This document shows, piece after piece, positions 7,555-44,302 of a stretch of 64,000 nucleotides of DNA. Under the pieces are notes generated by a model. That model did not search any database, was not told where the DNA came from, and saw only the letters and a list, made by a program, of their open reading frames with translations. The position numbers were made by a program, and so were the translations under genes. The stretch's first letter is position 1; each line of letters opens with the position of its first letter. Where the stretch lies: sequence record MZ475892.1; one strand, 5' to 3'.

Positions 7555-7880
7555 TGTATCGCTTCCAGACTTGTCCCATTGAAGGTACGAAGGAGCTGGT
7601 GGTATATCGCCACCCTTCGTTCTCCAACTACGGTCTGGCCTTAAAGGTAAATCGCACTGGTGAGCAAAACGCTGTTCAGTGCGATATTGTCTCAGGCAAT
7701 ATTGATGGCGTCTCTCGTCTGGATGCCATTACAGACCATACTGCCCCACTTGATGTACAGCTATGGGCTTTTACCTGTATGCACATCTTGCGGGAATCTG
7801 TAAATATCGAGAGCATTAATCTTGATACGCTGTTTAGCAATAATGGCGGTATCGTATACTATGGTACTTCAGGAGAATAA
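7554..7880 (+). CDS. hypothetical protein
   Basis: 108 aa, TAATG coupling to upstream gene. Confidence 0.7.
   Translation: MYRFQTCPIEGTKELVVYRHPSFSNYGLALKVNRTGEQNAVQCDIVSGNIDGVSRLDAITDHTAPLDVQLWAFTCMHILRESVNIESINLDTLFSNNGGIVYYGTSGE
7798..7805 (+). promoter_or_regulatory. CTGTAAAT candidate phage promoter
   Basis: Recurring motif, about 80 nt before GTG 7883. Confidence 0.55.
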
Positions 7881-7882
7881 TC

Positions 7883-8269
7883 GTGAGCGGAATGTTTCCT
7901 CATCATGTAATTGAACAAAAGAAAGGCTTCGTGTTTATCGTCACTCCGATTGAGGACGATCCAGACAGTCTCGAAGCTGCGGAAGAAGTGCGTGCAGTAC
8001 TCGAAGAGTCGTGGCCTACTGCACCTTCTGAGTTGACCGTGGACGACGTTCGCGATCCTGAAGAAGCTGAGTTAATCTTGGCTGACATTCTGGAGGTTCT
8101 GGGCGAAGCAGAATCTGAGTACGCGAACAAAGTCCTGATCAACAGCGTGATTGTTGTCGGCGCTCTGGCCATCGTTAACGTCCTGCTGCTGGACGAAGAA
8201 GTCAATTCCGAAGAAGAGGAAGAAGACGATGACGCTGATCAGTCTGCGGACGAAGAAGAGTTCGAATAA
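7883..8269 (+). CDS. highly acidic hypothetical protein
   Basis: 128 aa, AGGAG RBS, Asp/Glu-rich throughout with acidic tail. Confidence 0.75.
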   Translation: MSGMFPHHVIEQKKGFVFIVTPIEDDPDSLEAAEEVRAVLEESWPTAPSELTVDDVRDPEEAELILADILEVLGEAESEYANKVLINSVIVVGALAIVNVLLLDEEVNSEEEEEDDDADQSADEEEFE

Positions 8270-8279
8270 CGTAGACCGT

Positions 8280-8297
8280 GAGGACCTTCGGGTCCTC
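8280..8297 (+). promoter_or_regulatory. cUUCGg tetraloop hairpin abutting a start codon
   Basis: GAGGACC-TTCG-GGTCCTC perfect 7-bp stem, no U tract, ATG at 8298. Confidence 0.7.
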
Positions 8298-8432
8298 ATG
8301 AATCTAACAGACAAGCATCCCGTACTTGCCGCCAAGTATCTCACTAATCAGACCCCTGTGTATGCGCGTGCGTTACTTGATGAACTCAACAACGAGGAAG
8401 TATCTGACCTCTACTATCAAATGGTAGCATGA
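8298..8432 (+). CDS. small hypothetical protein (44 aa)
   Basis: ATG 8298 in frame of track ORF 8151..8432; stop overlaps next start. Confidence 0.5.
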   Translation: MNLTDKHPVLAAKYLTNQTPVYARALLDELNNEEVSDLYYQMVA

Positions 8433-9939: not shown

Positions 9940-9946
9940 GAATGAT

Positions 9947-10492
9947 ATGAAACATCCTCAGCGCGTTGCTCATTTAGAGCATTGGTTGGAGGCGGGTCGT
10001 GCCGCTTTCACCATGGGTGTGCGTACACCAAATAAAGATGGCGTGGAGCTGCTTGCTATTTTCCGTGCTGTGTCTCGTGGTACAAAAGACCAGTGCGCTG
10101 CATCAATCAAAAAGCAAACGGCAGAACTGATTGAAGACATTGAACGCGATGTGCCTGCCTTCAAAGTCATTCGTCGTCGCTTCCGCAAAGAGTTTTATCC
10201 AGACTACAACATACCTGCAGAAGTCGAGCTGTATGTTGCGCTTCTGGCAGAGACGTTCGGTGACATTGTGCAGACCATGACGTACCTGCATCTTCGTCGC
10301 TGTGTCGATACTAAGGACCTGTTGCTTAACTGGCTGCCAAATGGGTATCCAGCTAAAGACGCTATGGGTCTCCTGTGGAACTTACAGAAAGTGCCTACCG
10401 AGAACGAGTTCATGTTCACCGGAAATGCGGTAGATTGCATACAATCTGTAAATGACCTATACAACAAAATGTATAAGACAGGAGACAAGTAA
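9947..10492 (+). CDS. hypothetical protein
   Basis: 181 aa, AGGA RBS. Confidence 0.75.
   Translation: MKHPQRVAHLEHWLEAGRAAFTMGVRTPNKDGVELLAIFRAVSRGTKDQCAASIKKQTAELIEDIERDVPAFKVIRRRFRKEFYPDYNIPAEVELYVALLAETFGDIVQTMTYLHLRRCVDTKDLLLNWLPNGYPAKDAMGLLWNLQKVPTENEFMFTGNAVDCIQSVNDLYNKMYKTGDK
10446..10453 (+). promoter_or_regulatory. CTGTAAAT candidate phage promoter
   Basis: About 40 nt before ATG 10492. Confidence 0.6.
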
Positions 10493-11079: not shown

Positions 11080-11094
11080 CTCTGGGGTGTATTG

Positions 11095-11427
11095 ATGAAT
11101 ACAATACGCGGTTTTGATTGGCTTTTTTATGAGGATGGCACCGACAGTGGCCAACACTCTGTTTTAAATATCGTCTGTGAACCACAGACTAAATCAATGC
11201 AGGTAGAAGTTCGAAAGGGATGCGCCGCACCTGTAATTCAAGCAATTCAGGAAAATGAAATCCTGTATGCTCAGACTGATGAAGGACTTTATCGAGTTCG
11301 TTATCGTTGTTCGTTTAAGCATCTTGCAGCGAACGCATTTCCTCCAGAGATGACAGTGATCAAGTTGAAGTTGCTTGCACTCGACTTTCTTCCGGGCGTT
11401 ACTACGCACGATAAACCTTTGGACTAA
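11095..11427 (+). CDS. hypothetical protein
   Basis: 110 aa, GGGGTG RBS. Confidence 0.65.
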   Translation: MNTIRGFDWLFYEDGTDSGQHSVLNIVCEPQTKSMQVEVRKGCAAPVIQAIQENEILYAQTDEGLYRVRYRCSFKHLAANAFPPEMTVIKLKLLALDFLPGVTTHDKPLD

Positions 11428-13377: not shown

Positions 13378-14640
13378 ATGAAAGTAAACGGGCGTATCTT
13401 AGCTATCGTCCCACACAAGACAATGCAAGACCGTACCAAGTCTGGTGTGGGTTCGTACATTGATGGGCTAGAGGCATACGGCTTCTGCGACTTTATCACG
13501 GACGGAGAGAACAGCTCCGTTACGAAAAGTCAGTGGTTCACTTACGGTGACACTACTCTCAGTGACGGTTATAAGATAGGGCATATCCAGAGCGAGTTGC
13601 TGATTGCACTTGAGCGCCTCCCATACCGTGCGATTATTTGCAGCACGTATGAGGCGATTGAAGCCTGTGTGTCTCTGGGACTGCCAAAGATTATGCCCGT
13701 TTACTATCGCACGCACAACAGCTTTTTGCTCACACAAGATCTCAAGGGTCTTGGTGCAGAGAAGATCCATCGTGCGTTGTTGCAAGCACGCGTCACAGGG
13801 CTGCGCATACTTGCTAACTGTGATTCGACTGCGATCAATCTTACTGAGCGCTATAAGACGCCAGCACACGTTGCCTACAACTCGTTCTCGGTGCCTGACT
13901 ACAACCCACCAGCTCGGCGTTCTCCGCAACTGTTGATTATCTGTCGCTATGAGAAGGTCAAGCGCACGCTGTTTGCTGCGCGTATTGCTGCTGCATCAGG
14001 ACTACCCGTTCGTGTTATGACAGGCAGTGATCGTCAAGCACGCAATTGGGAGAAAGAGCTGGCTGAGGCGGGCGTCAAAGAGTATACGGTCGTCAGTGGC
14101 CTTAGCGGCAAACAGAAACTCGAATTTATAGGCGCTTGCACCGTAGCCCTTTCTACTGCGAGCGTTGAATCATTTGCTAATGGTGTGCGTGAGTCTATCC
14201 CCTACTGTCCTACCTTTATCGTGCAAACATCCAAGTACGATTGGGCTAAGGACTATACGCGCTTCTGTACCGCCGACAAGCATGTTCATATCAGAACTGT
14301 TGATCGCGTATCGGACCAAGCCGTAGCTGAAATCGGAAGTGAGATAGCGCAAACAGCTACCACTCGTTATCTGACAGGACCTCAGCGTAAGCAGCTACTG
14401 ACTGCTTGGGCAAAGCAAGTTGATCGTGGTTGGTCCGACTTTGTCCAGAAGGCTGTTGTTGACGATGACGGCAAGCCGCTGCGCACCGAGCTGTATCAAG
14501 AACTGATCGACAAGTCAGAGATCGATTGGTCACAAACGCCCACGCTGATGCGTACTGTAAATGCGTTACATAAATGCCACGCTCGTTTGGGCCTGACATT
14601 TGATGGCACTAAAATCAAATATAAGAGGAAGCGCAAATGA
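13378..14640 (+). CDS. GT-B fold glycosyltransferase (GT4-like)
   Basis: 420 aa; ICRYEKVKR and STASVESFANGVRES resemble GT4 nucleotide-sugar-binding motifs. Confidence 0.65.
   Translation: MKVNGRILAIVPHKTMQDRTKSGVGSYIDGLEAYGFCDFITDGENSSVTKSQWFTYGDTTLSDGYKIGHIQSELLIALERLPYRAIICSTYEAIEACVSLGLPKIMPVYYRTHNSFLLTQDLKGLGAEKIHRALLQARVTGLRILANCDSTAINLTERYKTPAHVAYNSFSVPDYNPPARRSPQLLIICRYEKVKRTLFAARIAAASGLPVRVMTGSDRQARNWEKELAEAGVKEYTVVSGLSGKQKLEFIGACTVALSTASVESFANGVRESIPYCPTFIVQTSKYDWAKDYTRFCTADKHVHIRTVDRVSDQAVAEIGSEIAQTATTRYLTGPQRKQLLTAWAKQVDRGWSDFVQKAVVDDDGKPLRTELYQELIDKSEIDWSQTPTLMRTVNALHKCHARLGLTFDGTKIKYKRKRK
14555..14562 (+). promoter_or_regulatory. CTGTAAAT candidate phage promoter
   Basis: About 75 nt before ATG 14637. 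Confidence 0.5.
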
Positions 14641-16557: not shown

Positions 16558-16812
16558 ATGCATCCTGTTATCACAGACTTTCTTGGTCCTATCGTTAAGC
16601 GGCTGGGCTTATTCACTGCTATATTCGGTTTTGTCGGCGTGCTGCTGTCTGTGATCGCAGTGCTTGTGTGCCGCCCAGAAGTCCTTCAATACGAATACGA
16701 TACTGTAAATAGACTTCGTACTGAGGGTATTGTATTCTTGGGTAAAGGCGTTCTTGTTTACATCGTAGGCGAGATACTTGAAGGCACGTTCAAGTGGAGA
16801 AAAGATGATTAA
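16558..16812 (+). CDS. small membrane protein
   Basis: 84 aa with two hydrophobic stretches. Confidence 0.6.
   Translation: MHPVITDFLGPIVKRLGLFTAIFGFVGVLLSVIAVLVCRPEVLQYEYDTVNRLRTEGIVFLGKGVLVYIVGEILEGTFKWRKDD
16703..16710 (+). promoter_or_regulatory. CTGTAAAT candidate phage promoter
   Basis: About 95 nt before ATG 16805. Confidence 0.45.
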
Positions 16813-19116: not shown

Positions 19117-19142
19117 AAAGGGTGGCTTCGGCTGCCCTTTTT
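19117..19142 (+). terminator. intrinsic terminator (copy 1 of repeated cassette)
   Basis: AAAGGGTGGC-TTCG-GCTGCCCTTTTT. Confidence 0.9.
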
Positions 19143-19146
19143 CGAT

Positions 19147-19154
19147 CTGTAAAT
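19147..19154 (+). promoter_or_regulatory. CTGTAAAT candidate phage promoter
   Basis: Intergenic, right after terminator, 30 nt before ATG 19185. Confidence 0.7.
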
Positions 19155-19184: not shown

Positions 19185-19586
19185 ATGAGACCTGAAAACA
19201 TTTCACGCACCTATCGCGTCGGTCAGTCTGACCTGGAGAAAGCACACAACGTCTGCGGAGAGAACAATGTAACACTCTCAGATGTGGTACGCAGATACAT
19301 CGAAAGAATCGTACTGACTGAGGGTGAGTTCCTTATGAGCGAGCGTAAGCACGTACCTGAGTCTCAACTGAATGTACGCCTGCCCTTTTACATTGCGCAC
19401 TCCTTTGCATCTGTGTGTAAGTCTCGTGATACGTTAGCCTCTAAAACCATTCTCAACTTTGTCAGGAATATTGCTCTTTCAGGTACTATCCCTGAGGAGT
19501 TAAAGTACGCCTCAGACACAGAGTTGCGTGCCTATATTACCTCCGAGCGCTCCCGCCTCGATGCACTGGAAGCAAAACTTAAATGA
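19185..19586 (+). CDS. tandem ribbon-helix-helix DNA-binding protein
   Basis: SRTYRV...TLSDVVRRYIERI and QLNVRLP...ASKTILNFVRNI. Confidence 0.55.
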   Translation: MRPENISRTYRVGQSDLEKAHNVCGENNVTLSDVVRRYIERIVLTEGEFLMSERKHVPESQLNVRLPFYIAHSFASVCKSRDTLASKTILNFVRNIALSGTIPEELKYASDTELRAYITSERSRLDALEAKLK

Positions 19587-20422
19587 TTCTAACTAGCCCC
19601 ATTCGCTATCAGGGCAACAAGCGCACTCTGATGCCTCTTATTCTTGAACATGCGCCTGTGAAGGATTGCGTTCGCATGATAGACGCATTCGGCGGTAGCG
19701 GTACTGTTGCGCTCAACATGCCTCACAAGTTTCGCATCTACAATGAATTGAGCACGCCTGTGTTTGAGATCGTCCAGTTGCTTGCGCATCAAGATCCGAA
19801 GAAAACGTTGGGTCAGATCAAGCGTATCGTCAAGCGTTTTTGTCTAACCAATAGCAGCCAAGACAACTACGACATGTTCCGCGCGTATGTGCAGAAGAAG
19901 CCTAGCCCTCTTCACCATTACATCGCACACAGGCATGCACGCTCTAACATGCTGCGCTTCAACCAGAAAGGCATCTACAACGTGCCGTTCGGCGAGCGGG
20001 GACTGATTGGCAAGTTCGATCAGCTCGAACAGGAGCTGGTGCAGTTCCACGAGCGTATGCAGAACACGCACATCACCAACATGCGCTACAACATGTTGCT
20101 CAAGTCTGTGTCAAAGCATATCGGACCTAACACGTTCATTTACTTTGACCCTCCGTATCTTGCTAGCGGTGCGATGCAATACGGTAAGTGGACTGAGCAC
20201 AACGAACGCAACCTGCTGTCCGTACTTGAGTATCTGAATCGTCAAGGCTGCCCGTGGATGTTGAGCAACGTTCTCCAACATCGGCATCACACGAACGACC
20301 TGCTCAAACGCTGGCTAAAGAAACACGCAACGACTGTCATCTATCCTGACAAGTCTTATTCAATGGCCAACTCTCATTCCGATAGTCACAGCACTATCGA
20401 GATCCTGGCAATGAACTACTGA
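19583..20422 (+). CDS. dam: DNA adenine methyltransferase (Dam/D12 class)
   Basis: PIRYQGNK, DAFGGSG, FNQKGIYNVPFG, YFDPPY. Confidence 0.92.
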   Translation: MILTSPIRYQGNKRTLMPLILEHAPVKDCVRMIDAFGGSGTVALNMPHKFRIYNELSTPVFEIVQLLAHQDPKKTLGQIKRIVKRFCLTNSSQDNYDMFRAYVQKKPSPLHHYIAHRHARSNMLRFNQKGIYNVPFGERGLIGKFDQLEQELVQFHERMQNTHITNMRYNMLLKSVSKHIGPNTFIYFDPPYLASGAMQYGKWTEHNERNLLSVLEYLNRQGCPWMLSNVLQHRHHTNDLLKRWLKKHATTVIYPDKSYSMANSHSDSHSTIEILAMNY

Positions 20423-20895: not shown

Positions 20896-21198
20896 ATGGA
20901 GGCACCAGAAGGTACTAACTTAAAGCTGTGGTCTATTGCGAAGCGTATGGACAGAGTGCTTGAACATGTGGCAAGAGAAGCATGGTTCGTGTCCGGCGAT
21001 CCAAAAGACACCTGCGGCGCTGTTGCGTGGGCGGGCAACTTTGATGATGAGTCTTTGATCGCGCATATTGAAATGCGTGCTGCCCAGATTGAAGAACGCC
21101 GTCGATACACAACACGTATCAGACAGGGCTCTACTGCTTATACGGTAGCGTTAGAGAATCATGCAGACGCTATCTATGCTAAGTATGGTCGAACATGA
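20896..21198 (+). CDS. hypothetical protein
   Basis: GGAG RBS before ATG 20896. Confidence 0.7.
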   Translation: MEAPEGTNLKLWSIAKRMDRVLEHVAREAWFVSGDPKDTCGAVAWAGNFDDESLIAHIEMRAAQIEERRRYTTRIRQGSTAYTVALENHADAIYAKYGRT

Positions 21199-21503
21199 TG
21201 GACATACTGAACGTCCTTGATACACGCATCATTCAATACGAAGATCTTGTCTATGCGTTAGGCCGTAAGTATCGCACGTCTCAAGGTCAATGGGGTGCGC
21301 TTGCCCCTTTCTCTCATGCAGGTCAAGCCCGTAAGATATTCATTTCACGAACCCGTGCAGCCTATAGAAGTTTGCGTACATGGGCACAGGAGCCTATGAA
21401 CATTGAAGTGGCTTACTATGAGATTCGCATATTGCTCAAGCATCCTATCGCGCAAGAAATAGAGCATCTGTCTGAATCTGTAAAGAAACCTAAAGCCATC
21501 TAA
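21195..21503 (+). CDS. hypothetical protein
   Basis: 102 aa, ATGA overlap. Confidence 0.65.
   Translation: MMDILNVLDTRIIQYEDLVYALGRKYRTSQGQWGALAPFSHAGQARKIFISRTRAAYRSLRTWAQEPMNIEVAYYEIRILLKHPIAQEIEHLSESVKKPKAI
21478..21485 (+). promoter_or_regulatory. CTGTAAAG variant promoter motif
   Basis: 30 nt before ATG 21515. Confidence 0.45.
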
Positions 21504-23335: not shown

Positions 23336-23720
23336 TCAGTTACGTGATCAATTGACCGAAGCTGAATACGCAGAACTTGAGCGCACGACAGCACGGTCAA
23401 TCATGGAACAAGTGTGGGCACTACGCGGCTGGACGGTTAAGCTCGACTGGTGCAACTATATGTGCGACGACGTTGATTGGTTATTCCATGGTAATGAACG
23501 TAAAGCACCGGTTGATCACGCTATGCCGAATTCTGGTGTTGGCACTAGCATTGAGCAGCATCGCCTTAATGTCGTGTTTACTCCTACTGAGGTTAGCGTT
23601 ACGAACTCACTGGTAGACAGCCCTGTCACGGGCACTGGTATGTCACTGCGCTGTGCTTACTGCGCGTGGCTTTTAGCAATCGAAAAACAAAAGGCTGCCA
23701 ATGCGCTGCAATCTGACTGA
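23322..23720 (+). CDS. hypothetical protein
   Basis: 132 aa, start uncertain. Confidence 0.6.
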   Translation: MSSVNQLRDQLTEAEYAELERTTARSIMEQVWALRGWTVKLDWCNYMCDDVDWLFHGNERKAPVDHAMPNSGVGTSIEQHRLNVVFTPTEVSVTNSLVDSPVTGTGMSLRCAYCAWLLAIEKQKAANALQSD

Positions 23721-24216
23721 ACTGCCTATCAAACTCGATCAGGCTGAAAACATTATGGGCAGCGTGTTTGCGCTTGCTGCTGGCTCTAAGTCCAAACGCC
23801 GTGCTACTGCTGCAATGCTCATCCATTTCCATGAAGGCTACCCTACGATCATCAGTAGTGGTGTCAATGGTACTGTGCCTGGTGAAAGCAACGTGTGTGA
23901 GAATGAAGACCTCACTCTGACGTTTGCTCACGTCACCCACGCAGAAGCTAACTGCCTCAATCGCATGGACGAATACAGTCTGTGGCCAGAAGAAGAGGAC
24001 ATCCTGTTTTGTACTGACAGCCCCTGTCCTGATTGTTTGCAGCAACTCGAATCTGCTGGTGTGCAGACCATCGTTTATGCGCGTGAATACAGACTCACAG
24101 AGCACCTGGATAAGTCTGCTATTCGCATGTATTGTCTCGATATTGAGAACGTGAGGGCGTCTTTGCTGAAATCTGTAAATCGTATAGACGAAGTGATTGC
24201 AACCACACCTACTTAA
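23701..24216 (+). CDS. dCMP deaminase
   Basis: SSGVNGT, HAEAN, TDSPCPDC Zn-binding motifs, IVYAREYR. Confidence 0.92.
   Translation: MRCNLTELPIKLDQAENIMGSVFALAAGSKSKRRATAAMLIHFHEGYPTIISSGVNGTVPGESNVCENEDLTLTFAHVTHAEANCLNRMDEYSLWPEEEDILFCTDSPCPDCLQQLESAGVQTIVYAREYRLTEHLDKSAIRMYCLDIENVRASLLKSVNRIDEVIATTPT
24173..24180 (+). promoter_or_regulatory. CTGTAAAT candidate phage promoter
   Basis: About 55 nt before ATG 24234. Confidence 0.55.
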
Positions 24217-26038: not shown

Positions 26039-26568
26039 TGGAGATCGGCTATCGCTGTGTCAACTGCCGTCACGTCTATCAAGACATTATCGGCAAGTGT
26101 GATTGCAACAACGACAAGTTCGTGTTCAAACGCGTTGCAATCATTGATGTGCCTGATGAGGAAGAAGAGATTCCTCAACTGAATGAGTTGCATCATTCAC
26201 GCGGTCCTCGTTTAGTTAACTACCGCAATGGCAGTTCGTGGAATGGCGTGTATGAGTATCAAGGCCTGCATGAGAACGGCCGACCTCGCGTAGGCATTCT
26301 CGGTAACATGGGCAGTAGCTATGACCACGTAGAGACTACCATTGATTTCAATAACCGTAACATGCAGGCTAACTGTGTTCTGACTGCCGCTAGCCCCGAG
26401 TTGTTGGAAGTTGCCTACATGTGCTACAACTATTTCAATACGAAACGCAAGGTGCAGGGCAACAGCCCTAAAACTGAAATGCGTATCAAACTAATCGCGC
26501 AGGCTATTCACGCTGCGACTGACCTTTCCGTATACAAGGAACCGCAAGATGCTCCAGTATCTAAGTGA
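26038..26568 (+). CDS. hypothetical protein with N-terminal Cys cluster
   Basis: CVNC...CDC, 176 aa. Confidence 0.7.
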   Translation: MEIGYRCVNCRHVYQDIIGKCDCNNDKFVFKRVAIIDVPDEEEEIPQLNELHHSRGPRLVNYRNGSSWNGVYEYQGLHENGRPRVGILGNMGSSYDHVETTIDFNNRNMQANCVLTAASPELLEVAYMCYNYFNTKRKVQGNSPKTEMRIKLIAQAIHAATDLSVYKEPQDAPVSK

Positions 26569-27190
26569 CCCGCATTTTATGACGCGCCTTCTGTGCGCAG
26601 TAATTCTGATTATCGTTGCTTATCTGATTTGGCAGAAATTGAAGATCAGACGCGCAGAGAGCATGAACAACTACCGCGCTTCGTTGGCGGTACGTGCCGG
26701 TGATTTCAATTTCGGGCGTTGCTGGCGTCATCGCAGTTCGGGCCGTGATTACGTTATACTGTGGATGACCAACCTTACTGCTAACAAGCAGGGCTGGGAA
26801 GTTATGGTAACGTACACAAACAACCATCGCGATCTGTACACGCGTCCTGTGTCGCAGTTCTACGCTAAGTTCCGTCGTATGCCTGACTCTGATAGTGTGA
26901 AAGACCTGTCGCTGTCTGAGCTGCTTACTCTGGCTACAGCTAACTGTAAGATGCGCGTACCACTTGCGGGTGAGACGTGGGTTCGTGAAACCTCGTTGAA
27001 TCTTAATGGCACGGAAGGTTCGTCCATCACAGAAGCCACAATCACTGACGTGTTGGCGCTTGACACGTCTCGTCCTGTTGTCACGTATACTGTAAATGGT
27101 AAACACACAGCAATGCTGATGTATGTTTTCCTCGCTGATTTCAAACTAAAGGAAGTGCAACGTGAGCAACAACCAAAAGTTACCGCCTAA
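26549..27190 (+). CDS. membrane-anchored protein with DUF1653-like domain
   Basis: N-terminal TM (LLCAVILIIVAYLIW); WRHRSSGRDY...VMVTY...YTRPVSQF. Confidence 0.6.
   Translation: MLQYLSDPHFMTRLLCAVILIIVAYLIWQKLKIRRAESMNNYRASLAVRAGDFNFGRCWRHRSSGRDYVILWMTNLTANKQGWEVMVTYTNNHRDLYTRPVSQFYAKFRRMPDSDSVKDLSLSELLTLATANCKMRVPLAGETWVRETSLNLNGTEGSSITEATITDVLALDTSRPVVTYTVNGKHTAMLMYVFLADFKLKEVQREQQPKVTA
27090..27097 (+). promoter_or_regulatory. CTGTAAAT candidate phage promoter
   Basis: About 65 nt before GTG 27162. Confidence 0.5.
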
Positions 27191-28138: not shown

Positions 28139-29239
28139 ATGACAGGTCCTCTCGATCTCACTAACCCACAGCACTTCGAACTGTACTCGCTGCACAGCGT
28201 TGATGCACAGTATATCAATCTGTGTGACGCACTCCTCACTCAGGGTACGCACGAATCTGACCCAGAGCGCACTACTGATACGTGGCATACGCTGATCGGT
28301 ATTGGCTTCCAGTTGTCTAACACCAACATCGCTTTCCCTGCGCTGCTGTCTAAGCGTGTCAACGTCCGTGCAGCTATCGATGAATCATGCTGGTTCGCAC
28401 GCGGTGAAACGAACATCGCAACTCTCGGTTCTAAAATCTGGAACGAGTGGGCAGACGAAGAAGGTGAGAACGGTCCTATCTACGGCTTCCAGTATCGAAA
28501 CTGGCCTGACATTAAAGTGTTCAACACTGTCGAAGGTATGATTGAGCAGCACATCCCACCAGCAATGATTGAGCGCATCTCGAAAGAGATCAACCGCATG
28601 AAGGCGCAGGGCTATATCGAAACTGCGTTGCCTGATGGTCGCGTGCTGTATGAAGGCTATATCGATCAGTACGCTGATGCACTACGTCAAATCATGGCGC
28701 GTAGTCGTAGCCGCCGCATTCGTGTGCAAGCGTTCAACCCTGGTTACGTTGGTATGCAGAGCCTGCCTCCGTGTCACACTGAGTTTGAGTTCAACGTGAC
28801 CAAAGCTACTGCGTATGAAATTGCGCAGATGGAAGCACGCTCAATGCGCCCTGACGCTGACTCACTGCATATCGTGGTGACCATGCGCTCAAACGACGCG
28901 CTCTTGGGCAGGCCATTCAACATCGTTGGCTACAGCGCCATGCACCAGTTGTTTGCGAAGTGGGCGGGTCTGAACGTTGGTTCGTTTACTCTGAATGTGA
29001 CCAATATGCACATGTACGATCACCACCGCGAAGCGTATGCACAACAGCGTGAGCAGTGGCTGGAACTACAGACGCAGATGCAGACGACAGGCAAACCTGT
29101 TGTTTACCCTACCCTCGAAATCACTGACGACATTCTGGGCCTGACGCCAGAAGAGCTGCTGGATAACGTCAACGTCGATTGGTTCGAGCTGGTGGACTAC
29201 TCTCCTAAACCTGCTGTTAAAGGACGCGTAACCAAATGA
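28139..29239 (+). CDS. thyA: thymidylate synthase
   Basis: GPIYGFQYRNW, SRR, LPPCH, MRSNDALLGRPFN (Asn, dUMP-type), HMYDHH. Confidence 0.93.
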   Translation: MTGPLDLTNPQHFELYSLHSVDAQYINLCDALLTQGTHESDPERTTDTWHTLIGIGFQLSNTNIAFPALLSKRVNVRAAIDESCWFARGETNIATLGSKIWNEWADEEGENGPIYGFQYRNWPDIKVFNTVEGMIEQHIPPAMIERISKEINRMKAQGYIETALPDGRVLYEGYIDQYADALRQIMARSRSRRIRVQAFNPGYVGMQSLPPCHTEFEFNVTKATAYEIAQMEARSMRPDADSLHIVVTMRSNDALLGRPFNIVGYSAMHQLFAKWAGLNVGSFTLNVTNMHMYDHHREAYAQQREQWLELQTQMQTTGKPVVYPTLEITDDILGLTPEELLDNVNVDWFELVDYSPKPAVKGRVTK

Positions 29240-30857: not shown

Positions 30858-31196
30858 ATGAAATATGATAAGACCAAAGACTACCAACCGTTCAAGTATC
30901 TTGAGCCGGACCCAAAGGCTCCAAGAGTAGGCTTCTACGGTTCGACTGGCCACACTGTCACAAAGGACGTTCTGATAGGGCAGGACGTATGCGAGTTTGA
31001 GTTCAAGCCTGAAGAGTTGAACAATATGAATCGCGGTACGCTGCTCTTCCGTGCTAAAGATAGTGGCGGAACTATTGTCGTAAAGAAATGCTCTGTGCTT
31101 GGATTGAAAATGGTAATTACGCTAGAGAGAAGGGTGATTCAGTTCGGCAAGGTTCAAGCTGAATGGATGACCACATCCCGACTGTATAACTACTAA
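30858..31196 (+). CDS. hypothetical protein
   Basis: 112 aa, AGGAG RBS. Confidence 0.75.
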   Translation: MKYDKTKDYQPFKYLEPDPKAPRVGFYGSTGHTVTKDVLIGQDVCEFEFKPEELNNMNRGTLLFRAKDSGGTIVVKKCSVLGLKMVITLERRVIQFGKVQAEWMTTSRLYNY

Positions 31197-31204
31197 CTGT
31201 AAAT
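31197..31204 (+). promoter_or_regulatory. CTGTAAAT candidate phage promoter
   Basis: Intergenic, about 35 nt before ATG 31239. Confidence 0.65.
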
Positions 31205-31938: not shown

Positions 31939-34074
31939 ATGATCATCAAGCCGCCTACAATGAAAGAGATTAATAAGCTGCCCAAGCCTTGGTCAGGTAT
32001 GAGTTTCTTTGCAGGTTGCGGTGGTTCATCTACCGGTCACAAGATGGCCGGTATTAACATCCTACTGAGCAACGAGTTCGTGGACGCGGCTCGTGAATCG
32101 TATGAAGCGAACCATCCAACAACCAAAGTGTTGCCCCACGATATTCGTCGTCTTGACCCGAAAAAGCTGCTTAGCTATTGCGGCCTGAGTCAGGGCGAAC
32201 TGGACTTGCTCGACGGCAGTCCTCCGTGCTTCACCGAAGACACGTTCATTCATACCGACACTGGTATGAAGTTCATCACTGATATGCGCATCGGTGACTT
32301 CGCTATGACCTCTGTTGGTAAGTATCATCCAGTGTATGACACGATGGTACGTCCGTATGACGGTCAGATGCACAGAATTGAAACGCTGCTTGGTCAGAAC
32401 AATGCAACGCCTGAACATCCGTTCTTTGTTCGTCGTCAGAATGAAGAAACTGGCGGGTACAGTGAGCCGTTCTGGTGTGACGCTAAAGATGTGCAGGAAG
32501 GTGACCTGTTAGGTACGCCTCGTGTTACGCCTGATATGGGCGAAGCACACACGCATGAGATTATCTCGTCGTTGACTGCGCAGCTTGTGCGTTGGATTGC
32601 ATTGCCTGAGTTCTGGTGGCTGATTGGTCACTGGTGCAATCGCGGTGCAATCGATAAGATTCGTGGTGTCGATGTTATTCAATTCACCTCGATGACAGCG
32701 ATGGAAAACTCGCTGGTGGAACAAGCGTTCGACGTGCTCAAGTTAAGCAGCATCAACAGCGCTTCGTCCGACATGGGCGTTCATCGTAAGACCGTTCGTG
32801 TTGTTATGGACACAGACCTGTTGCTGTTCTTGCGTATGTTTATCGCGCAGGGCAAGAAGTCTATGTCCCGCCGTCTGCCTGGCATGATCTTCCATCTGGC
32901 TAAAGAGCTGAAACAGCAATTCATTCTCGGCTATCTGGGTCGTGATTACGTCACAGCAATGGGCGTTGGTCATGCGTTAGAGGCTGACTCAAAGCGCTTC
33001 CTAGTTGAGATGAATTACCTGTGCTGCTCTGCGTTCAACAGACCGCTGTTCGATGCAATGTTGTTCACTGACTTGCATTACGGTAGTCCGATGTTACCAC
33101 CGAGTCGCTTCATTACCAAAGAGCACATCGGCTTCCTGTTCTTGCAAGAAGAGGTTAATTTCTTCTTTGAGTTCGAGCCGGAAGACCCGCATCTGTGGGT
33201 TGAAGTGATTGAGAACTTTACGCATCATGAAACGTGCAACGTCTATAACTTCTCAGTCAGTGTTGATGAGACGTATGTTGCTAACGGCATGGTCGTGCAT
33301 AACTGCAAAGGGTTCTCGACTGCTGGCGTGAAAGAAGACGGCTGGGGCAAAGAGGTTAAGTACAGCGGCAACAAGTATCAGCAAGTCGATGACCTGTTCG
33401 ATCAGTATTGCCGTATGCTCAAGCACATGCAGCCTAAAACGTTCACTGCGGAAAACGTTAGTGGCCTCGTTAAAGGTGCGTCGAAGGGTTACTTCATTGA
33501 AATCATGAAGACCTTTGATCAGCTGGGCTACTATGTGCGAGCGCCGTTGCTTAATGCTGCGTGGCTTGGTGTGCCTCAGTCTCGTGAGCGTATCATCTTT
33601 ATGGGTGTGCGCAAAGACGTGGCGAAAGCACTCGGCTATAAAACTGCGTTGACTGCTGTGCCTGATGTAACACCTCAATCAAGCATGGCGTTCCTTGCAG
33701 ATGCATTGCCGAACATTCGTCGTTATAAAGGTACGGAGCGTGACATTATCAAGTATCTGCCTGCTGTTAACGGCCCGATGCCTACGATTACCGCTGCTGA
33801 TGCTATCGCATACGAAACAGCACGCTTCTCCTCTGCTGGCTTCATTGAAGACGACAAAGGGCACAGACGCAAGCTGACGATTGACGAACTCAAAGTTGTG
33901 TCAGGCATGCCTAGTGATTACGTGCTCACAGGTAAGTTTGAAGAACAATGGGAACGTCTCGGTCGTGTGTGCGTACCTGCAATGACGTGTGCTGCGGCAA
34001 GCGCGTTGATACGCCATGTGCTTGAGCCTTACGCGAAGCTGCGTAAAAAGAAACCTGGGGATCGTTTTCGTTAA
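31939..34074 (+). CDS. C5-cytosine methyltransferase family enzyme with intein; probable carboxymethyltransferase
   Basis: FFAGCGG (I), DIRRL, GSPP|C (IV), ENVSG (VI), QSRER (VIII), RKLTIDE (IX), ERLGRVCVP (X with Arg for Asn); GAGGGA RBS. Confidence 0.9.
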   Translation: MIIKPPTMKEINKLPKPWSGMSFFAGCGGSSTGHKMAGINILLSNEFVDAARESYEANHPTTKVLPHDIRRLDPKKLLSYCGLSQGELDLLDGSPPCFTEDTFIHTDTGMKFITDMRIGDFAMTSVGKYHPVYDTMVRPYDGQMHRIETLLGQNNATPEHPFFVRRQNEETGGYSEPFWCDAKDVQEGDLLGTPRVTPDMGEAHTHEIISSLTAQLVRWIALPEFWWLIGHWCNRGAIDKIRGVDVIQFTSMTAMENSLVEQAFDVLKLSSINSASSDMGVHRKTVRVVMDTDLLLFLRMFIAQGKKSMSRRLPGMIFHLAKELKQQFILGYLGRDYVTAMGVGHALEADSKRFLVEMNYLCCSAFNRPLFDAMLFTDLHYGSPMLPPSRFITKEHIGFLFLQEEVNFFFEFEPEDPHLWVEVIENFTHHETCNVYNFSVSVDETYVANGMVVHNCKGFSTAGVKEDGWGKEVKYSGNKYQQVDDLFDQYCRMLKHMQPKTFTAENVSGLVKGASKGYFIEIMKTFDQLGYYVRAPLLNAAWLGVPQSRERIIFMGVRKDVAKALGYKTALTAVPDVTPQSSMAFLADALPNIRRYKGTERDIIKYLPAVNGPMPTITAADAIAYETARFSSAGFIEDDKGHRRKLTIDELKVVSGMPSDYVLTGKFEEQWERLGRVCVPAMTCAAASALIRHVLEPYAKLRKKKPGDRFR
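32227..33303 (+). mobile_element. intein (359 aa) with degenerate LAGLIDADG region
   Basis: CFTEDT start, ATPEHPF block B, VVHN end, Cys +1 is the catalytic Cys; LIGHWCNRG and FILGYLGRD remnants. Confidence 0.92.
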
Positions 34075-35974: not shown

Positions 35975-36000
35975 AAAGGGTGGCTTCGGCTGCCCTTTTT
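35975..36000 (+). terminator. intrinsic terminator (copy 2, identical to 19117-19142)
   Basis: AAAGGGTGGC-TTCG-GCTGCCCTTTTT. Confidence 0.9.
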
Positions 36001-36004: not shown

Positions 36005-36012
36005 CTGTAAAC
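36005..36012 (+). promoter_or_regulatory. CTGTAAAC variant promoter motif
   Basis: Intergenic after terminator, about 24 nt before ATG 36036. Confidence 0.65.
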
Positions 36013-39962: not shown

Positions 39963-40382
39963 ATGTTACCTTTTGCCCCTCGGACGTTAGTGGTTAGTAT
40001 GCGCAATGGCAACAAAGAGTTTGATGTACGCATCGACCGCGAATCTATGTGGGGCAATAAGTTCTACATGAAGAACGAAAGCAAGGAAGAACGTGCGCGA
40101 GTTATCTATGAGTATGGCGTGTGGCTGTGGACTAAGATCTACAACGGAGACATTACACTAAGTCAGCTAGACGCACTATATGGGAAGCGTCTGGGCTGCT
40201 GGTGCTCACCTAAGCCTTGTCATGGCGATGAGTTGAGAAAAGCCGTAGAATGGGCACACGCTACAATCTGTAAATGGGAACGTATATCACGCACATATGC
40301 AAGGAGAAAGAAACATGGGCACAGGCAGACCAAGAAAAGAAAAAGCGATGACAGCGGCCGAGCGTTCAAAAAAGCTGCGTAA
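39963..40382 (+). CDS. DUF4326 domain protein
   Basis: VRIDRESMWGNKF, LYGKRLGCWCSPKPCHGDEL. Confidence 0.88.
   Translation: MLPFAPRTLVVSMRNGNKEFDVRIDRESMWGNKFYMKNESKEERARVIYEYGVWLWTKIYNGDITLSQLDALYGKRLGCWCSPKPCHGDELRKAVEWAHATICKWERISRTYARRKKHGHRQTKKRKSDDSGRAFKKAA
40268..40275 (+). promoter_or_regulatory. CTGTAAAT candidate phage promoter
   Basis: About 40 nt before ATG 40315. Confidence 0.55.
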
Positions 40383-40596
40383 TCGTATGGCCCCTTTGGG
40401 CAAGCGAGTTGATATTTATATGGACGAGGAGACTCTTAAGGCGATTGACCGTGAAGTAGCTCAACGTCCTGCGCTGGTGGGCATTACGCCTGCTGTTGCA
40501 CGTAGCCAGTTGCTGCGTGAGATTCTTACAGGTCGTGAGTTCCTGGCTGACCTGACTGCATTCGAATACCACAGAGGTCAGACACGCGATGCGTAA
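40315..40596 (+). CDS. putative DNA-binding protein (RHH-like)
   Basis: GRPRK...AMTAAER...KRVDIYMDEETLKAID; AAGGAG RBS. Confidence 0.6.
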   Translation: MGTGRPRKEKAMTAAERSKKLRNRMAPLGKRVDIYMDEETLKAIDREVAQRPALVGITPAVARSQLLREILTGREFLADLTAFEYHRGQTRDA

Positions 40597-41140
40597 CAAA
40601 GAAAAAGTAAGACGCCGTTTCCTTTCTGCGGGTCGTTCGTTGGACGCTATCAGTTCTCAGGTGTTCACAAGCCCGTACTCGGGATTAGCATACGGCAGCT
40701 TTAGTCTAGCCGTGGGTTCGAGTTTTGTGCATATCCACGCGCTGGATGAGAGCACTGTCCCAGAGTCTGATGTTCTGTACCTGATGAAAGTCGATGCTGT
40801 CATTCGTCACCTCAAGGACTACATCGCGTTGTTGACTGATTGGGCTGATGGTCATGCGCGTATGTGGCTGAACCCTGAAGGCTCTGCTGCTACAGGCTGT
40901 GTCGCGTACCACCATGATGTATCGCATCCAGAGAAGCTCGCCTTCTTTGAGCTATCGTCCTGTAGTCAAACGTTCCGTTTGCAGATGATGACCTTCACGC
41001 ATAAGGAATACAAGAAGCACATCAACCTGCTGTCCAAAATTAAGGACCATCTTATTCGCCATCGCTTTGATATGGACGACTGGATGAAGGCTATTACTGC
41101 TGAGTCTGCACGACTCATGGATTCTGTAAATGAACAATAA
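40589..41140 (+). CDS. hypothetical protein
   Basis: 183 aa. Confidence 0.75.
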   Translation: MRNKEKVRRRFLSAGRSLDAISSQVFTSPYSGLAYGSFSLAVGSSFVHIHALDESTVPESDVLYLMKVDAVIRHLKDYIALLTDWADGHARMWLNPEGSAATGCVAYHHDVSHPEKLAFFELSSCSQTFRLQMMTFTHKEYKKHINLLSKIKDHLIRHRFDMDDWMKAITAESARLMDSVNEQ

Positions 41141-41249
41141 CAACGAGTGCTGCTGGTGTGCTTTCGGTATGGGTATAGTTCTCGGACTATTTATCGGCCT
41201 ATCGATTGCTGCCTTCGCTGTTAAATACGGCGTCTTCATAAAACTATAG
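41130..41249 (+). CDS. 39-aa single-TM peptide
   Basis: MNNNNECCWCAFGMGIVLGLFIGLSIAAFAVKYGVFIKL fills the gap before 41264. Confidence 0.45.
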   Translation: MNNNNECCWCAFGMGIVLGLFIGLSIAAFAVKYGVFIKL

Positions 41250-41263
41250 GACAAAAGTACCTC

Positions 41264-41932
41264 ATGCTTACTAACATTGCTCGACTTGCTGCTACTAACG
41301 CACACGCAAAACAAACTCGTCGCTTCACCGGCGAACCGTACATCAACCATCCACAAGCTGTCGTTAACTTCTTACAGCGCTTCAACGTGGGTGAACAGAT
41401 TCTCGCTGCTGCCTGGTGCCACGATGTGTTGGAAGATTGTGGTATCTGTTACGAAGCTCTGGAACTTTGCATCGGCACTACTGCAACCGATATCGTATTC
41501 GAAGTAACGAACAAAGAGTTCCCGGAAGGCACGCCACGCATTGAGAAATATTGGCATAACATCGAACGTCTGGTAATGGCTTCGCATCAGGCGCAGACGC
41601 TCAAGTGCGGTGACATTTACGATAACTGCAAAGATGTATATGAGCGTGACCAACACTACGGTGCTCGTTACATCGCAGAGAAGTATTTCCTGATTCGCAT
41701 GTTTGCGCGTGCTCAATCTGATGTACGTCAGACCGTTATGCAGATGCTGCATGATCGCTATCTGTCCATGACGCCGGATGATCGCATGTACTGCTTAGAG
41801 TATATGGCGCGTCTCGATAAAGAATGTCCAGCCGACCTGCGTTCTTTGTTTGACCAGGCCCGCAAAGAAGCTGGTGTTGAAAGCCTCTGCTGTGGAGAAC
41901 ATGATGGAGCTACCTGCATTCAAAACGCGTAA
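41264..41932 (+). CDS. HD-domain phosphohydrolase, SpoT/Mesh1-like
   Basis: AHAKQTRRFTGEPYINHP, AAAWCHDVLEDC, VFEVTN, LKCGDIYDN. Confidence 0.88.
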   Translation: MLTNIARLAATNAHAKQTRRFTGEPYINHPQAVVNFLQRFNVGEQILAAAWCHDVLEDCGICYEALELCIGTTATDIVFEVTNKEFPEGTPRIEKYWHNIERLVMASHQAQTLKCGDIYDNCKDVYERDQHYGARYIAEKYFLIRMFARAQSDVRQTVMQMLHDRYLSMTPDDRMYCLEYMARLDKECPADLRSLFDQARKEAGVESLCCGEHDGATCIQNA

Positions 41933-42278
41933 CGCTCTGGTTGAAAGCCTCACCATTCGTGATAAGCAAGCGTCTGCCTTAGTACGCGTGTACGAAACGA
42001 GCTGGTGGGGTTTCTGCAAACGTGACCTGTGCGTTGCTATCAACTGCCGTAAGATAACGCGCAAGGAACTCAAGTGGTCTAGCTATGTGCGGTGGTCTGA
42101 AGGTTATCAGATTCTGCCTGTATGCGAAGACAGCGAAGTCCTTCAGGTAGCAAACAGTGCGCTGAAAGATATGCGCCATCTTGGTTACACCAAGTATGAG
42201 CAGCTTCTGGCGTATCGTCTCCAAATTCACATGAGAAAGCACAATGCCAAAGAAAATTCTCACGCTCATTCACACTGA
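41901..42278 (+). CDS. hypothetical protein
   Basis: GGAG RBS before ATG 41901. Confidence 0.65.
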   Translation: MMELPAFKTRNALVESLTIRDKQASALVRVYETSWWGFCKRDLCVAINCRKITRKELKWSSYVRWSEGYQILPVCEDSEVLQVANSALKDMRHLGYTKYEQLLAYRLQIHMRKHNAKENSHAHSH

Positions 42279-42633
42279 TGTGGAAGACCAGAAGGCGTAT
42301 CTGGAAGACCGCTTTCATCGCAGCATTATGTTCATGCACACGACGACGAACCGCGACCCGTACAAACGTGAATCGAATCCGTGTACGTTCTGCATATATA
42401 AAGTGGAAGGCGCGAATGTGTATATCAACCTTCACGGCAACAATGAGATGCCAGAAGAGTTGGCGAGCACTCTCGGCTTGGTCAAAGTAAAAGAGTGGAC
42501 TCTTATCCGCCGTCAGTCGAACGTCTTCTTTGTAGGACGTAGCTCCGAAGCTATCATCGCAGAGAACGTTGTACCAATGGAAATTCGTGTTGAAGGAGCG
42601 CGTGATGCTGAACGATGCTGGTCCGGACATTGA
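42244..42633 (+). CDS. hypothetical protein
   Basis: 129 aa. Confidence 0.65.
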   Translation: MPKKILTLIHTDVEDQKAYLEDRFHRSIMFMHTTTNRDPYKRESNPCTFCIYKVEGANVYINLHGNNEMPEELASTLGLVKVKEWTLIRRQSNVFFVGRSSEAIIAENVVPMEIRVEGARDAERCWSGH

Positions 42634-43219
42634 GTTCGAAGCAATTGATATTGAGAAGTATTGGCAGGGTCGTATCTATCTCGAAGCTGGTCATCTGCAA
42701 GACGTAGAATCCAAGCTGGAGAATGTGGCGTATACCACCGATACGATTAAGCCCTACATCGAAGCCGCGACTAAGATCGTTGCATCGAAGCGTGAGCTGC
42801 ACGAGGAAGGCACTGACTTGCCTCAGGTGGAGTTGGGTGAAGGGCACACGATGAGTCCGTACTTTGTCATTGTGTTCTGTCTGATGTTCGAAGCGGAAGG
42901 CGTTATCAATGCGCAGACACGCAATGCCCTTAAGGGTTTGTCTCAGGCCGAGCGTGATAAAAAGATACGCATTGAGATTGCTGGGCATAGCAGCAAAATC
43001 GGTGTGAGTCTTCTCAAAGAGCTGGAAGCATCTATCTCTGATCGCTTTCATGACCGTCGCCCCGACTTCGCGTTTGCAGAGCTGTCCGAGCCTCGTGAGA
43101 AGAAGCCTACGTTTCGTGCTAATGCCCATCTCAAGCAAGGTCGTGTTGGCAGACACAGCGGCAATCAGCGATTCAATGCTAAGCCGCAGCGTCAGAACTT
43201 TAAAGGTCGTGGTAGATGA
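42605..43219 (+). CDS. hypothetical protein with basic C-terminus
   Basis: AAGGAG RBS before ATG 42605. Confidence 0.7.
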   Translation: MLNDAGPDIEFEAIDIEKYWQGRIYLEAGHLQDVESKLENVAYTTDTIKPYIEAATKIVASKRELHEEGTDLPQVELGEGHTMSPYFVIVFCLMFEAEGVINAQTRNALKGLSQAERDKKIRIEIAGHSSKIGVSLLKELEASISDRFHDRRPDFAFAELSEPREKKPTFRANAHLKQGRVGRHSGNQRFNAKPQRQNFKGRGR

Positions 43220-43584
43220 GCAAAATCTTCTATGCTACGGAGTATATTGATAATAAGCCTGTGGCAGTTCATCGCTTTCCTGCTGTTGAGCAAGGTCGAG
43301 CACTATCTGATTACCGTTCCTTGATCTCATTGGGTGCGTTCGATAAGCGTCAGACCGAGCAGTGTCTCAAAGACTGCATGGTGCGTCGATTCTACGTGAA
43401 GAACAAACGCGACTATGAGGCAGACAAGGAGATCTTGCAGAAGTCCTCTGCGCGTCTCAATCTACCTGAGGTAGGGCTAAGCACTGTCGAACACAAAGAC
43501 GTGTGGGCATTCTATAAAGCTGTCGGTTATGACTACCGTACTAAAACTCTGGGAGTGAAAGCAGATGACAAGCAACCTGTCTGA
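43216..43584 (+). CDS. hypothetical protein
   Basis: 122 aa, ATGA overlap. Confidence 0.7.
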   Translation: MSKIFYATEYIDNKPVAVHRFPAVEQGRALSDYRSLISLGAFDKRQTEQCLKDCMVRRFYVKNKRDYEADKEILQKSSARLNLPEVGLSTVEHKDVWAFYKAVGYDYRTKTLGVKADDKQPV

Positions 43585-44302
43585 CATTAAATTCGGTAGT
43601 CCATTGCCTGATATGGCGCAGAAGTTAGGCGAAGAAATCATCAAAGGCCGTATCGCAATCCCCAACACTCTGTGGGATTTGCATATTCAGTCTAATGTGC
43701 AGCTTCGTCCTATGACTGAGTTGGATATGGCTCTGACAAATACACTGAACGGCTCATGGACTTACGTGCCCAAATACTTGGGTCCAGCGCGAGCAATGCG
43801 TCAGGCATACAGCTTAGGCCGAACTGTGACAAGCGATGAGCCTCGTGCAGGCTATGAATTGCTGTTGAACCAAATGACCCGTCAGGCGGAGCAGCAATTC
43901 TTCTACAAGCCGCTGGGTGTGTTGCGCGATCATCTGCTCATTGACGGTAAAATCCGTATGCCTAAACGCTGGCATGTTGAGATTGGTCCGAAGTTTGCAC
44001 TGACTGTTGCCTCTTCCTCGTTTGAGTTGTTCCTCAATCAGGTAGATCACCAGGAAATGCTGCGTACCGTGTATGATATGCTATCGAGTGCGCTGGATAA
44101 TAACGATCCCGCGAATGCATCACACGTGGTGTGCTCTGATAGTTCTCGCGGTCCTACGGATGTGCATGTGCTGAACACGCAAGCAACTCCACCAGCAAGT
44201 TCTGTCAATATGACCAATATTTTCAGATTCCTGCTGCATCCAATCGGTCATGATCTGACGCAAGACAGACTTCAGGACTATTTGGAATCTGTAAATAACT
44301 GA
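43565..44302 (+). CDS. hypothetical protein
   Basis: 245 aa. Confidence 0.75.
   Translation: MTSNLSDIKFGSPLPDMAQKLGEEIIKGRIAIPNTLWDLHIQSNVQLRPMTELDMALTNTLNGSWTYVPKYLGPARAMRQAYSLGRTVTSDEPRAGYELLLNQMTRQAEQQFFYKPLGVLRDHLLIDGKIRMPKRWHVEIGPKFALTVASSSFELFLNQVDHQEMLRTVYDMLSSALDNNDPANASHVVCSDSSRGPTDVHVLNTQATPPASSVNMTNIFRFLLHPIGHDLTQDRLQDYLESVNN
44289..44296 (+). promoter_or_regulatory. CTGTAAAT candidate phage promoter
   Basis: About 50 nt before ATG 44348. Confidence 0.6.

Follow-up and report, generated by a model that had tools for sequence, protein, structure and literature searches.

The stretch of DNA analysed here (the window) comprises bases 1–64000 of the genome of Erwinia phage pEa_SNUABM_34 (MZ475892.1, 264,306 bp), a jumbo myovirus whose host is Erwinia amylovora; the full record was used for all genome-wide results. 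The phage belongs to the group of PaBG, Lu11, NCTB, Y3, Yoloswag and Alexandra (PMC7412058), and its close relative pEa_SNUABM_7 has been placed in the genus Snuvirus. The element in question is the octamer CTGTAAAT, which together with the form CTGTAAAC is written CTGTAAAY and which recurs on the plus strand of the window, shortly upstream of gene starts, along a block of genes at 7.8–46 kb. Genes directly behind its copies include those for a phosphatase-like protein, a ParB-like protein followed by a methyltransferase-like protein, and a metal-dependent phosphohydrolase, and the same block contains genes for a Dam-like methylase, a dCMP deaminase and a thymidylate synthase. Genes were predicted de novo across the record and agreed with the annotation at about 90% of starts within the window; starts are thus approximate. 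The copies and the hairpins associated with them are the following (distances in nucleotides, nt).

7798–7805, plus strand: CTGTAAAT in the 3' end of gene 7554–7880 (ESVN), 85 nt before GTG 7883 (phrog_29470); kept ahead of the orthologues in Yoloswag and Dickeya phage JA29, with syntenic counterparts at Alexandra 7798, Y3 7820 and Yoloswag 7733
10446–10453, plus strand: CTGTAAAT in the 3' end of gene 9947–10492 (QSVN), 46 nt before ATG 10492 (phosphatase-like, phrog_335); kept ahead of the Yoloswag orthologue, with syntenic counterparts at Alexandra 10451, Y3 10452, Yoloswag 10379 and JA29 10307
14555–14562, plus strand: CTGTAAAT in gene 13378–14640 (RTVN), 82 nt before ATG 14637
16703–16710, plus strand: CTGTAAAT in gene 16558–16812 (DTVN), 102 nt before ATG 16805
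19117–19140, plus strand: terminator-like hairpin with a 10-bp stem, UUCG loop and T-rich tail (−14.6 kcal/mol, z = −2.9)
19147–19154, plus strand: CTGTAAAT, intergenic, 38 nt before ATG 19185, which opens a gene run containing the Dam-like methyltransferase gene 19583–20422
21478–21485, plus strand: variant CTGTAAAG in gene 21195–21503, 37 nt before ATG 21515; weaker candidate
24173–24180, plus strand: CTGTAAAT in dCMP-deaminase gene 23701–24216 (KSVN), 61 nt before ATG 24234
27090–27097, plus strand: CTGTAAAT in gene 26549–27190 (YTVN), 72 nt before GTG 27162, with the thymidylate synthase gene 28139–29239 downstream
31197–31204, plus strand: CTGTAAAT, intergenic, 1 nt past the stop of gene 30858–31196 and 42 nt before ATG 31239 of the ParB-like gene, which is followed by the methyltransferase-like gene 31939–34074; the Yoloswag orthologue (67% identity) likewise has the motif
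35975–35998, plus strand: terminator-like hairpin identical to that at 19117 (−14.5 kcal/mol, z = −3.0)
36005–36012, plus strand: CTGTAAAC, intergenic, 31 nt before ATG 36036
40268–40275, plus strand: CTGTAAAT in gene 39963–40382, 80 nt before the annotated start 40348 and 47 nt before an earlier in-frame ATG, at 40315, that is preceded by the Shine-Dalgarno sequence AAGGAG
41124–41131, plus strand: CTGTAAAT in the last codons of gene 40589–41140 (DSVN), 140 nt before the annotated ATG 41264 (metal-dependent phosphohydrolase); the JA29 phosphohydrolase orthologue has the motif upstream
44289–44296, plus strand: CTGTAAAT in the last codons of gene 43565–44302 (ESVN), 59 nt before ATG 44348

An earlier inspection of the letters of the window (the sequence-only reading) had placed eleven exact copies at these same positions, with variants at 21478 and 36005, and all of them were found there; on the minus strand of the window CTGTAAAT does not occur. 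Among 100 dinucleotide-preserving shuffles of the window none reached 11 copies (mean 2.13 ± 1.44, maximum 6). A count over the full genome and a test of position relative to gene starts, both proposed as checks in the sequence-only reading, likewise bear out the recurrence. Genome-wide there are 28 exact copies, all co-oriented with the local genes and none antisense, against 3.8 expected from an order-2 Markov model, while the reversed word used as control occurs only 7 times. Of the single-base variants of CTGTAAAT, CTGTAAAC is the sole enriched one (16 sense, 0 antisense; 6.1 expected), position 8 thus tolerating T or C only, and the copy at 36005 is therefore counted as a member of the class. 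The two forms together give 44 sense and no antisense copies where about 8–10 are expected, and the enrichment over Markov models exceeds five-fold. The G form CTGTAAAG is unenriched (6 sense, 7.8 expected), so that of the two variants noted earlier 21478 stands only weakly; with a position weight matrix score of 16.2 and good flanks (gaatCTGTAAAGaa) it is a plausible, weaker candidate site.

With respect to genes, 32 of 43 CTGTAAAY copies lie 20–110 nt upstream of a predicted start, as do 12% of random positions (binomial P = 6e-21), and 19 of the 44 copies are intergenic, although intergenic DNA makes up only about 4% of the genome. For the window copies the next start is 31–102 nt away, with the exception of 41124. 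Across five genomes the median distance from motif to ATG is 43–57 nt. Two refinements of the annotation may be noted beside the last copies of the block: the gene in the region 40297–40596 possibly starts at 40315 instead of 40348, and between 41140 and 41264 (region 41130–41249) there is a possible small unannotated hydrophobic open reading frame. Outside the window CTGTAAAY precedes genes for an NAD-dependent ligase, a DNA polymerase subunit, a clamp loader, the single-stranded DNA-binding protein (SSB) and a sigma factor. As nucleotide metabolism, DNA modification and replication are the functions served, the genes behind the motif are of the middle type, not early.

The copies inside genes raise the question of whether the recurrence is a by-product of chance, of codon usage or of a repeated S/T-V-N protein motif. 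One reading frame, xCT-GTA-AAT, is indeed common to 17 of the 25 in-gene copies and yields (S/T/P/A)-V-N, so the earlier remark that such copies impose (S/T)VN on the upstream protein was correct. Of the other in-gene copies, four provide the stop codon of the upstream gene (CTG-TAA) and four read C-K, and the proteins carrying the motif are mutually unrelated. Together with the intergenic copies, the enrichment, the absence of antisense copies and the conservation at the DNA level ahead of orthologues despite diverged flanks, these counts refute the by-product explanation, for which practically no probability remains.

The anatomy of the element was derived from an alignment of 96 gene-proximal sites from three enterobacterial phages, which gave the consensus aA(a/t)(t/a)CTGTAAA(T/c)A. 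Columns −45 to −5 of the aligned sites carry no information, and hence there is no −35 box. Downstream, 80 of the 96 sites have a purine 15 nt past the first C, where C itself occurs in 3, and the base just before is mostly a pyrimidine; in NCTB the same +15 position is A in 18 of 24 sites, with C before it. The shortest spacings between motif and ATG, 31–35 nt, would keep the Shine-Dalgarno sequence in the transcript only if transcription started at or before about +17. The lack of an upstream box, the purine at +15 and the short spacings together place the motif at about −15 to −7 of a single-element promoter, and the consensus presumably represents the core −10-region element of middle-class promoters. 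The TATA/TACA-like bases that the sequence-only reading had noticed downstream of the copies are real but weak, and they form no separate box; they reduce to the pyrimidine-purine step 14–15 nt after the first C, which is better read as the probable transcription start site. At the closest-spaced sites the 5' leader would then be about 15–35 nt long.

Two of the window copies, at 19147 and 36005, begin 6 nt after the end of a terminator-like hairpin, and further terminator-motif cassettes are found at 146.3, 163.4, 173.5, 176.6 and 213.7 kb. Since many copies lie in the last codons of the preceding gene or right after a terminator, transcription would be re-started along co-directional gene arrays. 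The terminator hairpin itself (AAAGGGTGGCTTCGGCTGCCCTTT) is reused many times in the genome, and GGCTTCGG has 19 sense copies against 2.6 expected. These arrangements bear on a further explanation, namely that the motif is no promoter at all but an oriented RNA site for processing, stability or translation, or else the binding site of a DNA regulator or nucleoid protein. Strict sense orientation would also be expected of an RNA element, and the many copies inside upstream coding sequence would be present in read-through messenger RNA; on the other hand, little RNA should reach the several copies that directly follow strong terminator hairpins, and around the motif there is neither a conserved structure nor a partner sequence. 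For a core promoter one would expect both the conserved purine at a constant 15 nt and a 38-kb block otherwise free of promoter-like signals, and a non-promoter role is accordingly improbable. Two other candidates were rejected. A methylation or packaging site does not suit an asymmetric, gene-oriented motif that lies ahead of starts. Reading the motif as a MotA-box-like element at −30 fails for want of a −10 box 11–13 nt further on, and at the shortest spacings it would put the Shine-Dalgarno sequence before the transcription start. On balance CTGTAAAY is very probably a promoter.

A more serious alternative is that this promoter is read by the host sigma-70 holoenzyme, reprogrammed by the phage through a T4 MotA/AsiA-like activator and appropriator or through ADP-ribosylation, with no phage sigma factor involved. 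The genome encodes an Alt-like RNA polymerase ADP-ribosyltransferase (phrog_832) and many small early genes without known function, and in the putative start frame the motif reads T at −12 and A at −11, the two most conserved bases of the sigma-70 −10 element. Sigma-70 also requires T at −7. In the same frame none of the 28 exact copies has T at this position (A in 17, G in 7, C in 4), and only 12 of the 96 aligned sites have it. Neither a conserved upstream column, as the sigma-70 consensus would have, nor a second box at activator distance is present in the aligned sites. Between 7 and 46.5 kb, sigma-70-type matches are fewer than in shuffled sequence (14 against 21.7, and 16 against 21.5), and only one weak match, at 36008, overlaps a motif copy. 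Two sigma-like proteins, described below, are moreover conserved across the clade alongside two motif classes that are not of the sigma-70 type, so that reading by a reprogrammed host holoenzyme appears unlikely, though less so than a role other than that of a promoter.

Conservation among relatives was followed with an unbiased 7-mer scan that covered, for every predicted gene, the 92 nt ahead of it in the full genomes of pEa_SNUABM_34, Yoloswag, JA29, NCTB and PaBG. CTGTAAA is the most enriched upstream 7-mer in the first four of these; in PaBG it ranks fourth and the overlapping AAACTGT ranks first. The second enriched family in four genomes is CTAATTT/TAATTT, which is enriched in Yoloswag, JA29 and NCTB. 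Orthologues of the motif-bearing genes of pEa_SNUABM_34 also have the motif in 17 of 20 cases in Yoloswag (Fisher P = 4e-16), 13 of 20 in JA29 (1e-9), 9 of 14 in NCTB (6e-6) and 4 of 9 in PaBG (1e-3), the PaBG numbers being weak because gene calls are poor in its GC-rich genome. Whole-record counts of CTGTAAAY against the reversed-word control were 53/15 in Yoloswag, 41/2 in Alexandra, 42/15 in Yersinia phage fHe-Yen9-02, 57/10 in JA29 and 34/11 in NCTB. When the upstream regions of orthologues are aligned, conservation is confined to the motif with its A/T prefix, the flanks having diverged, and this holds ahead of orthologues in phages whose proteins are only 25–50% identical. The motif lies about 40 nt before both the sigma factor gene and the SSB gene in Alexandra, AD1, Y3, fHe-Yen9-02 and JA29; Yoloswag has CTGTAAAG before the former and CTGTAAAT before the latter, and NCTB has CTGTAAAA before its SSB gene. 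The RpoD-like sigma gene stands behind CTGTAAAT in six genera. In the neighbourhood of the SSB gene (start 198892) a palindrome, CTCAATATTGAG, at 198870–198885 overlaps the Shine-Dalgarno sequence; it is conserved in Alexandra, AD1, Y3, fHe-Yen9-02 and JA29 and has one mismatch in Yoloswag, the flanks differing, and it may be a translational operator for SSB.

A listing of all intergenic regions, combined with targeted counts, revealed three promoter-like classes. The first consists of extended −10 sigma-70 promoters (TGnTAtAaT) concentrated at 205–260 kb among small genes of unknown function. These often have an A(t/c)AAAtcTGGACAAAAt element about 29 nt upstream (e.g. 240021–240064, 241208–241251 and 259809–259851), which may be an UP-like or activator site since it lies too far upstream for a −35 box. 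The second is CTGTAAAY, at 7.8–46 kb and scattered over 87–260 kb. The third, (a/t)c(g/a)cTAATTT, is a candidate late promoter: of 51 TAATTT copies 42 read in the sense direction, and 23 are found 28–67 nt before starts, mainly of structural genes at 46–180 kb. A purine stands exactly 6 nt past the last T (G in 14 of 23), so that T at −12, A at −11 and T at −7 reproduce the canonical −10 geometry of the sigma-70 family. Copies of this type are placed as follows.

Window positions 5368, 12559, 30829 and 38882, plus strand: TAATTT-type motif
Window positions 47410, 50557 and 57386, minus strand: TAATTT-type motif
66–180 kb, outside the window: many more copies

One TAATTT-type motif precedes the gene pair before the portal gene.

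As to the protein that could read CTGTAAAY, the genome annotation contains no RNA polymerase gene, the sigma-independent type included, and two sigma-like proteins come into question. The first, gp243 (197807–198844, 345 amino acids), belongs to phrog_17569 ('RNA polymerase sigma factor'). Its family profile matches region 2 of SigA, including the KWW...N..T segment (E = 0.012), and some of its homologues carry PF04542. The AlphaFold model of a 96%-identical homologue (predicted local distance difference test score, pLDDT, 81) resembles domain 1.2-NCR-2 of E. coli sigma-70 (Foldseek probability 1.00, E = 9e-4). In gp243 a canonical region 4 could not be found. In the whole genome PF08281 (sigma region 4) has no match and PF04542 matches the known sigma gene only, below the cut-off, and PHROG scans of the ten genes upstream of the sigma gene revealed no regulator.

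The second protein, encoded at 262770–263909 (379 amino acids, phrog_19229), is annotated as 'hypothetical protein' and is the orthologue of PaBG_00112, a suspected sigma factor (HHpred 97%; PMC7412058). In a structure model built on a 100%-identical protein (pLDDT 83), residues 143–379 align with extracytoplasmic function (ECF) sigma factors: the nine top-ranking rows all belong to ECF factors (Z 6.8–9.9), and the sigma-2 domain fits at 2.1 Å root-mean-square deviation over 80 residues. An extra N-terminal domain of about 140 amino acids precedes this part, and many Sigma70_r2 clusters are found among the protein's atlas neighbours. Sigma region 2 binds the clamp helices of the beta' subunit. 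In the predicted complex, residues 155–204 of the ECF-like protein lie on the beta' clamp helices 267–298, with an interaction prediction score from aligned errors (ipSAE) of 0.68 against 0.00 for the best of three controls. Among solved complexes 58 of 80 reach this mark, among mismatched pairs 2 of 110; both counts are approximate here, as a custom alignment was used. Fold and complex prediction thus make this protein a candidate sigma factor. On the circular map its gene, which shares an operon with a topoisomerase-like gene, ends some 0.4 kb short of the window start, and the DnaB-like helicase gene (window 85–1500) follows downstream.

The regulatory regions of the two genes differ. Both an early-type extended −10 promoter (259843) and the motif precede the operon of the ECF-like gene in pEa_SNUABM_34, and both are also present in Yoloswag; PaBG has the extended −10 promoter only, and JA29 and NCTB the motif only. 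The RpoD-like gene has the motif only and is insulated upstream by a terminator. Because the reader of CTGTAAAY must first come from another promoter class, the ECF-like protein is favoured as the middle factor. By comparison, gp243 fits the late element better, because TAATTT keeps T at −12, A at −11 and T at −7, as for a sigma factor with regions 1.2 and 2; in exact copies of CTGTAAAYA position −7 is A, G or C and the information lies upstream, at −15 to −9. On promoter logic and fold analogy, then, the ECF-like protein is somewhat more probably the reader of CTGTAAAY than gp243.

Several observations weigh against this picture. When public RNA runs were sought with two parts of the window, none came up. 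Crude whole-record counts show little CTGTAAAY excess in PaBG and Lu11, and the copies at 134350, 226130 and 248033 are far from any start and may be non-functional. For the ECF-like family, sequence and profile searches against Pfam and the PDB gave nothing significant, nor did a profile-profile comparison with the RpoD-like family. Both sigma-like genes carry the motif upstream, and an autoregulated RpoD-like reader of CTGTAAAY is somewhat less probable than the ECF-like one. ECF sigma factors normally require a −35 element, so that the missing −35 box is unusual for a factor of this type and is the weakest point of the assignment.

Taking these points together, that CTGTAAAY is a promoter read through a phage sigma-like factor is given a probability of roughly 0.75. 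Host core RNA polymerase with a phage-encoded sigma-like subunit would bind the single element, at about −15 to −7 and with no −35 contact, and transcription would begin about 15 nt past the first C, at the purine. The resulting short-leader messenger RNAs would serve genes of nucleotide metabolism, DNA modification and replication, in the window the whole plus-strand block at 7.8–46 kb and elsewhere, among others, the genes for ligase, polymerase subunit, clamp loader, SSB and the two sigma-like proteins. The infection programme would then have three tiers: early extended −10 sigma-70 promoters (205–260 kb), middle CTGTAAAY, and late (g/a)cTAATTT before structural genes. Much more tentatively, an ECF-fold phage sigma factor with an extra N-terminal domain may direct the host polymerase to a single 12-bp −10 element without −35 contact, as an ancient switch forming the middle step of a two-sigma cascade in jumbo phages of Erwinia, Dickeya, Yersinia and Pseudomonas and in the marine phage NCTB. 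The sequence-only reading had proposed a phage-specific promoter for early or middle genes; orientation, position, conservation and the scarcity of sigma-70 sites support the promoter computationally, and 'early' is to be dropped.

For the PaBG/Lu11/Y3/Alexandra clade no promoters or temporal programme are described in the searchable literature, the coverage of which is partial, so that an earlier description is possible; searching for the literal motif brought up nothing but primers and an unrelated table of sigma-70 promoters. The CTGTAAAY signal thus seems undescribed, although promoter control of this kind is well known in phages, and jumbo phages without their own RNA polymerase encode sigma homologues that 'likely' direct the host polymerase to phage promoters (PMC13282480, PMC7824862). 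With the motif, the transcription units of the middle genes can be mapped at once, and a regulon conserved across very distant members of the group is defined; combined with the two sigma-like proteins and the late TAATTT element, the motif yields a directly testable model of the infection programme. Possible uses are better annotation of gene starts and small open reading frames, short portable phage-dependent promoters, and knock-down targets in Erwinia phages used against fire blight. Two further features of the genome were observed. On the minus strand, 86355–87672 is a stretch of 1.3 kb without annotated gene that begins just after a CTGTAAAT copy at 87660, and within it neither a transfer RNA nor an Rfam match was found. 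Copies of the E. coli Chi octamer GCTGGTGG far exceed expectation across the genome, the window included, with 71 sense copies against about 10 and 33 antisense against about 2 expected (order-2 Markov).

Among known systems, T4 middle promoters combine a MotA box at −30 with a sigma-70 −10 element and depend on AsiA. Similar to them, the CTGTAAAY class serves replication and nucleotide-metabolism genes and occupies a middle position in the programme; in contrast, its element appears to lie at −10 rather than −30, and no TAnnnT box is found at the right distance. T4 late promoters have just one element, TATAAATA, which is recognised by gp55 together with gp33 and the gp45 clamp. The pEa_SNUABM_34 motif is like them in being one sharply defined, A/T-rich element of 8–9 bp in the −10 region with no −35 box, in its presumed use by host core polymerase with a phage sigma-like subunit, and in that TGTAAATA is one base off TATAAATA. 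It differs from them in serving DNA metabolism and replication instead of structural genes, in its invariant CTG prefix, which is absent in T4, and in its candidate readers, a 345-amino-acid RpoD-like and a 379-amino-acid ECF-like protein. The form with the T4-like A in place of the G of the motif, CTATAAAT, is not enriched, with one sense and one antisense copy, the G of the motif being invariant and joined to the CT prefix, and homologues of gp55 or gp33 did not turn up, with no search aimed at either.

ECF promoters are bipartite, with a −35 element (e.g. GGAAC) and a GTC-like −10 element spaced by 16–17 bp. The 96 aligned sites hold no −35 information and their −10 word is only loosely similar. 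The promoters of E. coli sigma-E, with GGAACTTTT at −35 and (T/C)GGTCAAAA at −10 (PMC1312014), are a case for comparison. The candidate reader has a predicted ECF-type sigma-2/sigma-4 fold, the −10 words are loosely similar (GTcAAA and GTAAAT), and a purine start, in the phage a putative one, follows a few nucleotides downstream in both. Unlike sigma-E promoters, the phage element lacks a −35 box and has A where the flipped C of GTC would be, and the ECF-like protein, with its extra N-terminal domain of about 140 amino acids, has no detectable sequence similarity to ECF families.

The cascade of Bacillus phage SPO1 uses host sigma-A for early, gp28 for middle and gp33/34 for late promoters. 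The proteins are unrelated in sequence to those of pEa_SNUABM_34, and the SPO1 middle and late promoters are bipartite, with −35 and −10 elements, whereas the phage-specific classes described here are single elements. The proposed programme resembles that of SPO1 in its logic: three motif classes have distinct genomic distributions, phage sigma-like factors would replace the host sigma factor in turn, and the presumed later factor is encoded behind a promoter belonging to the class before it.

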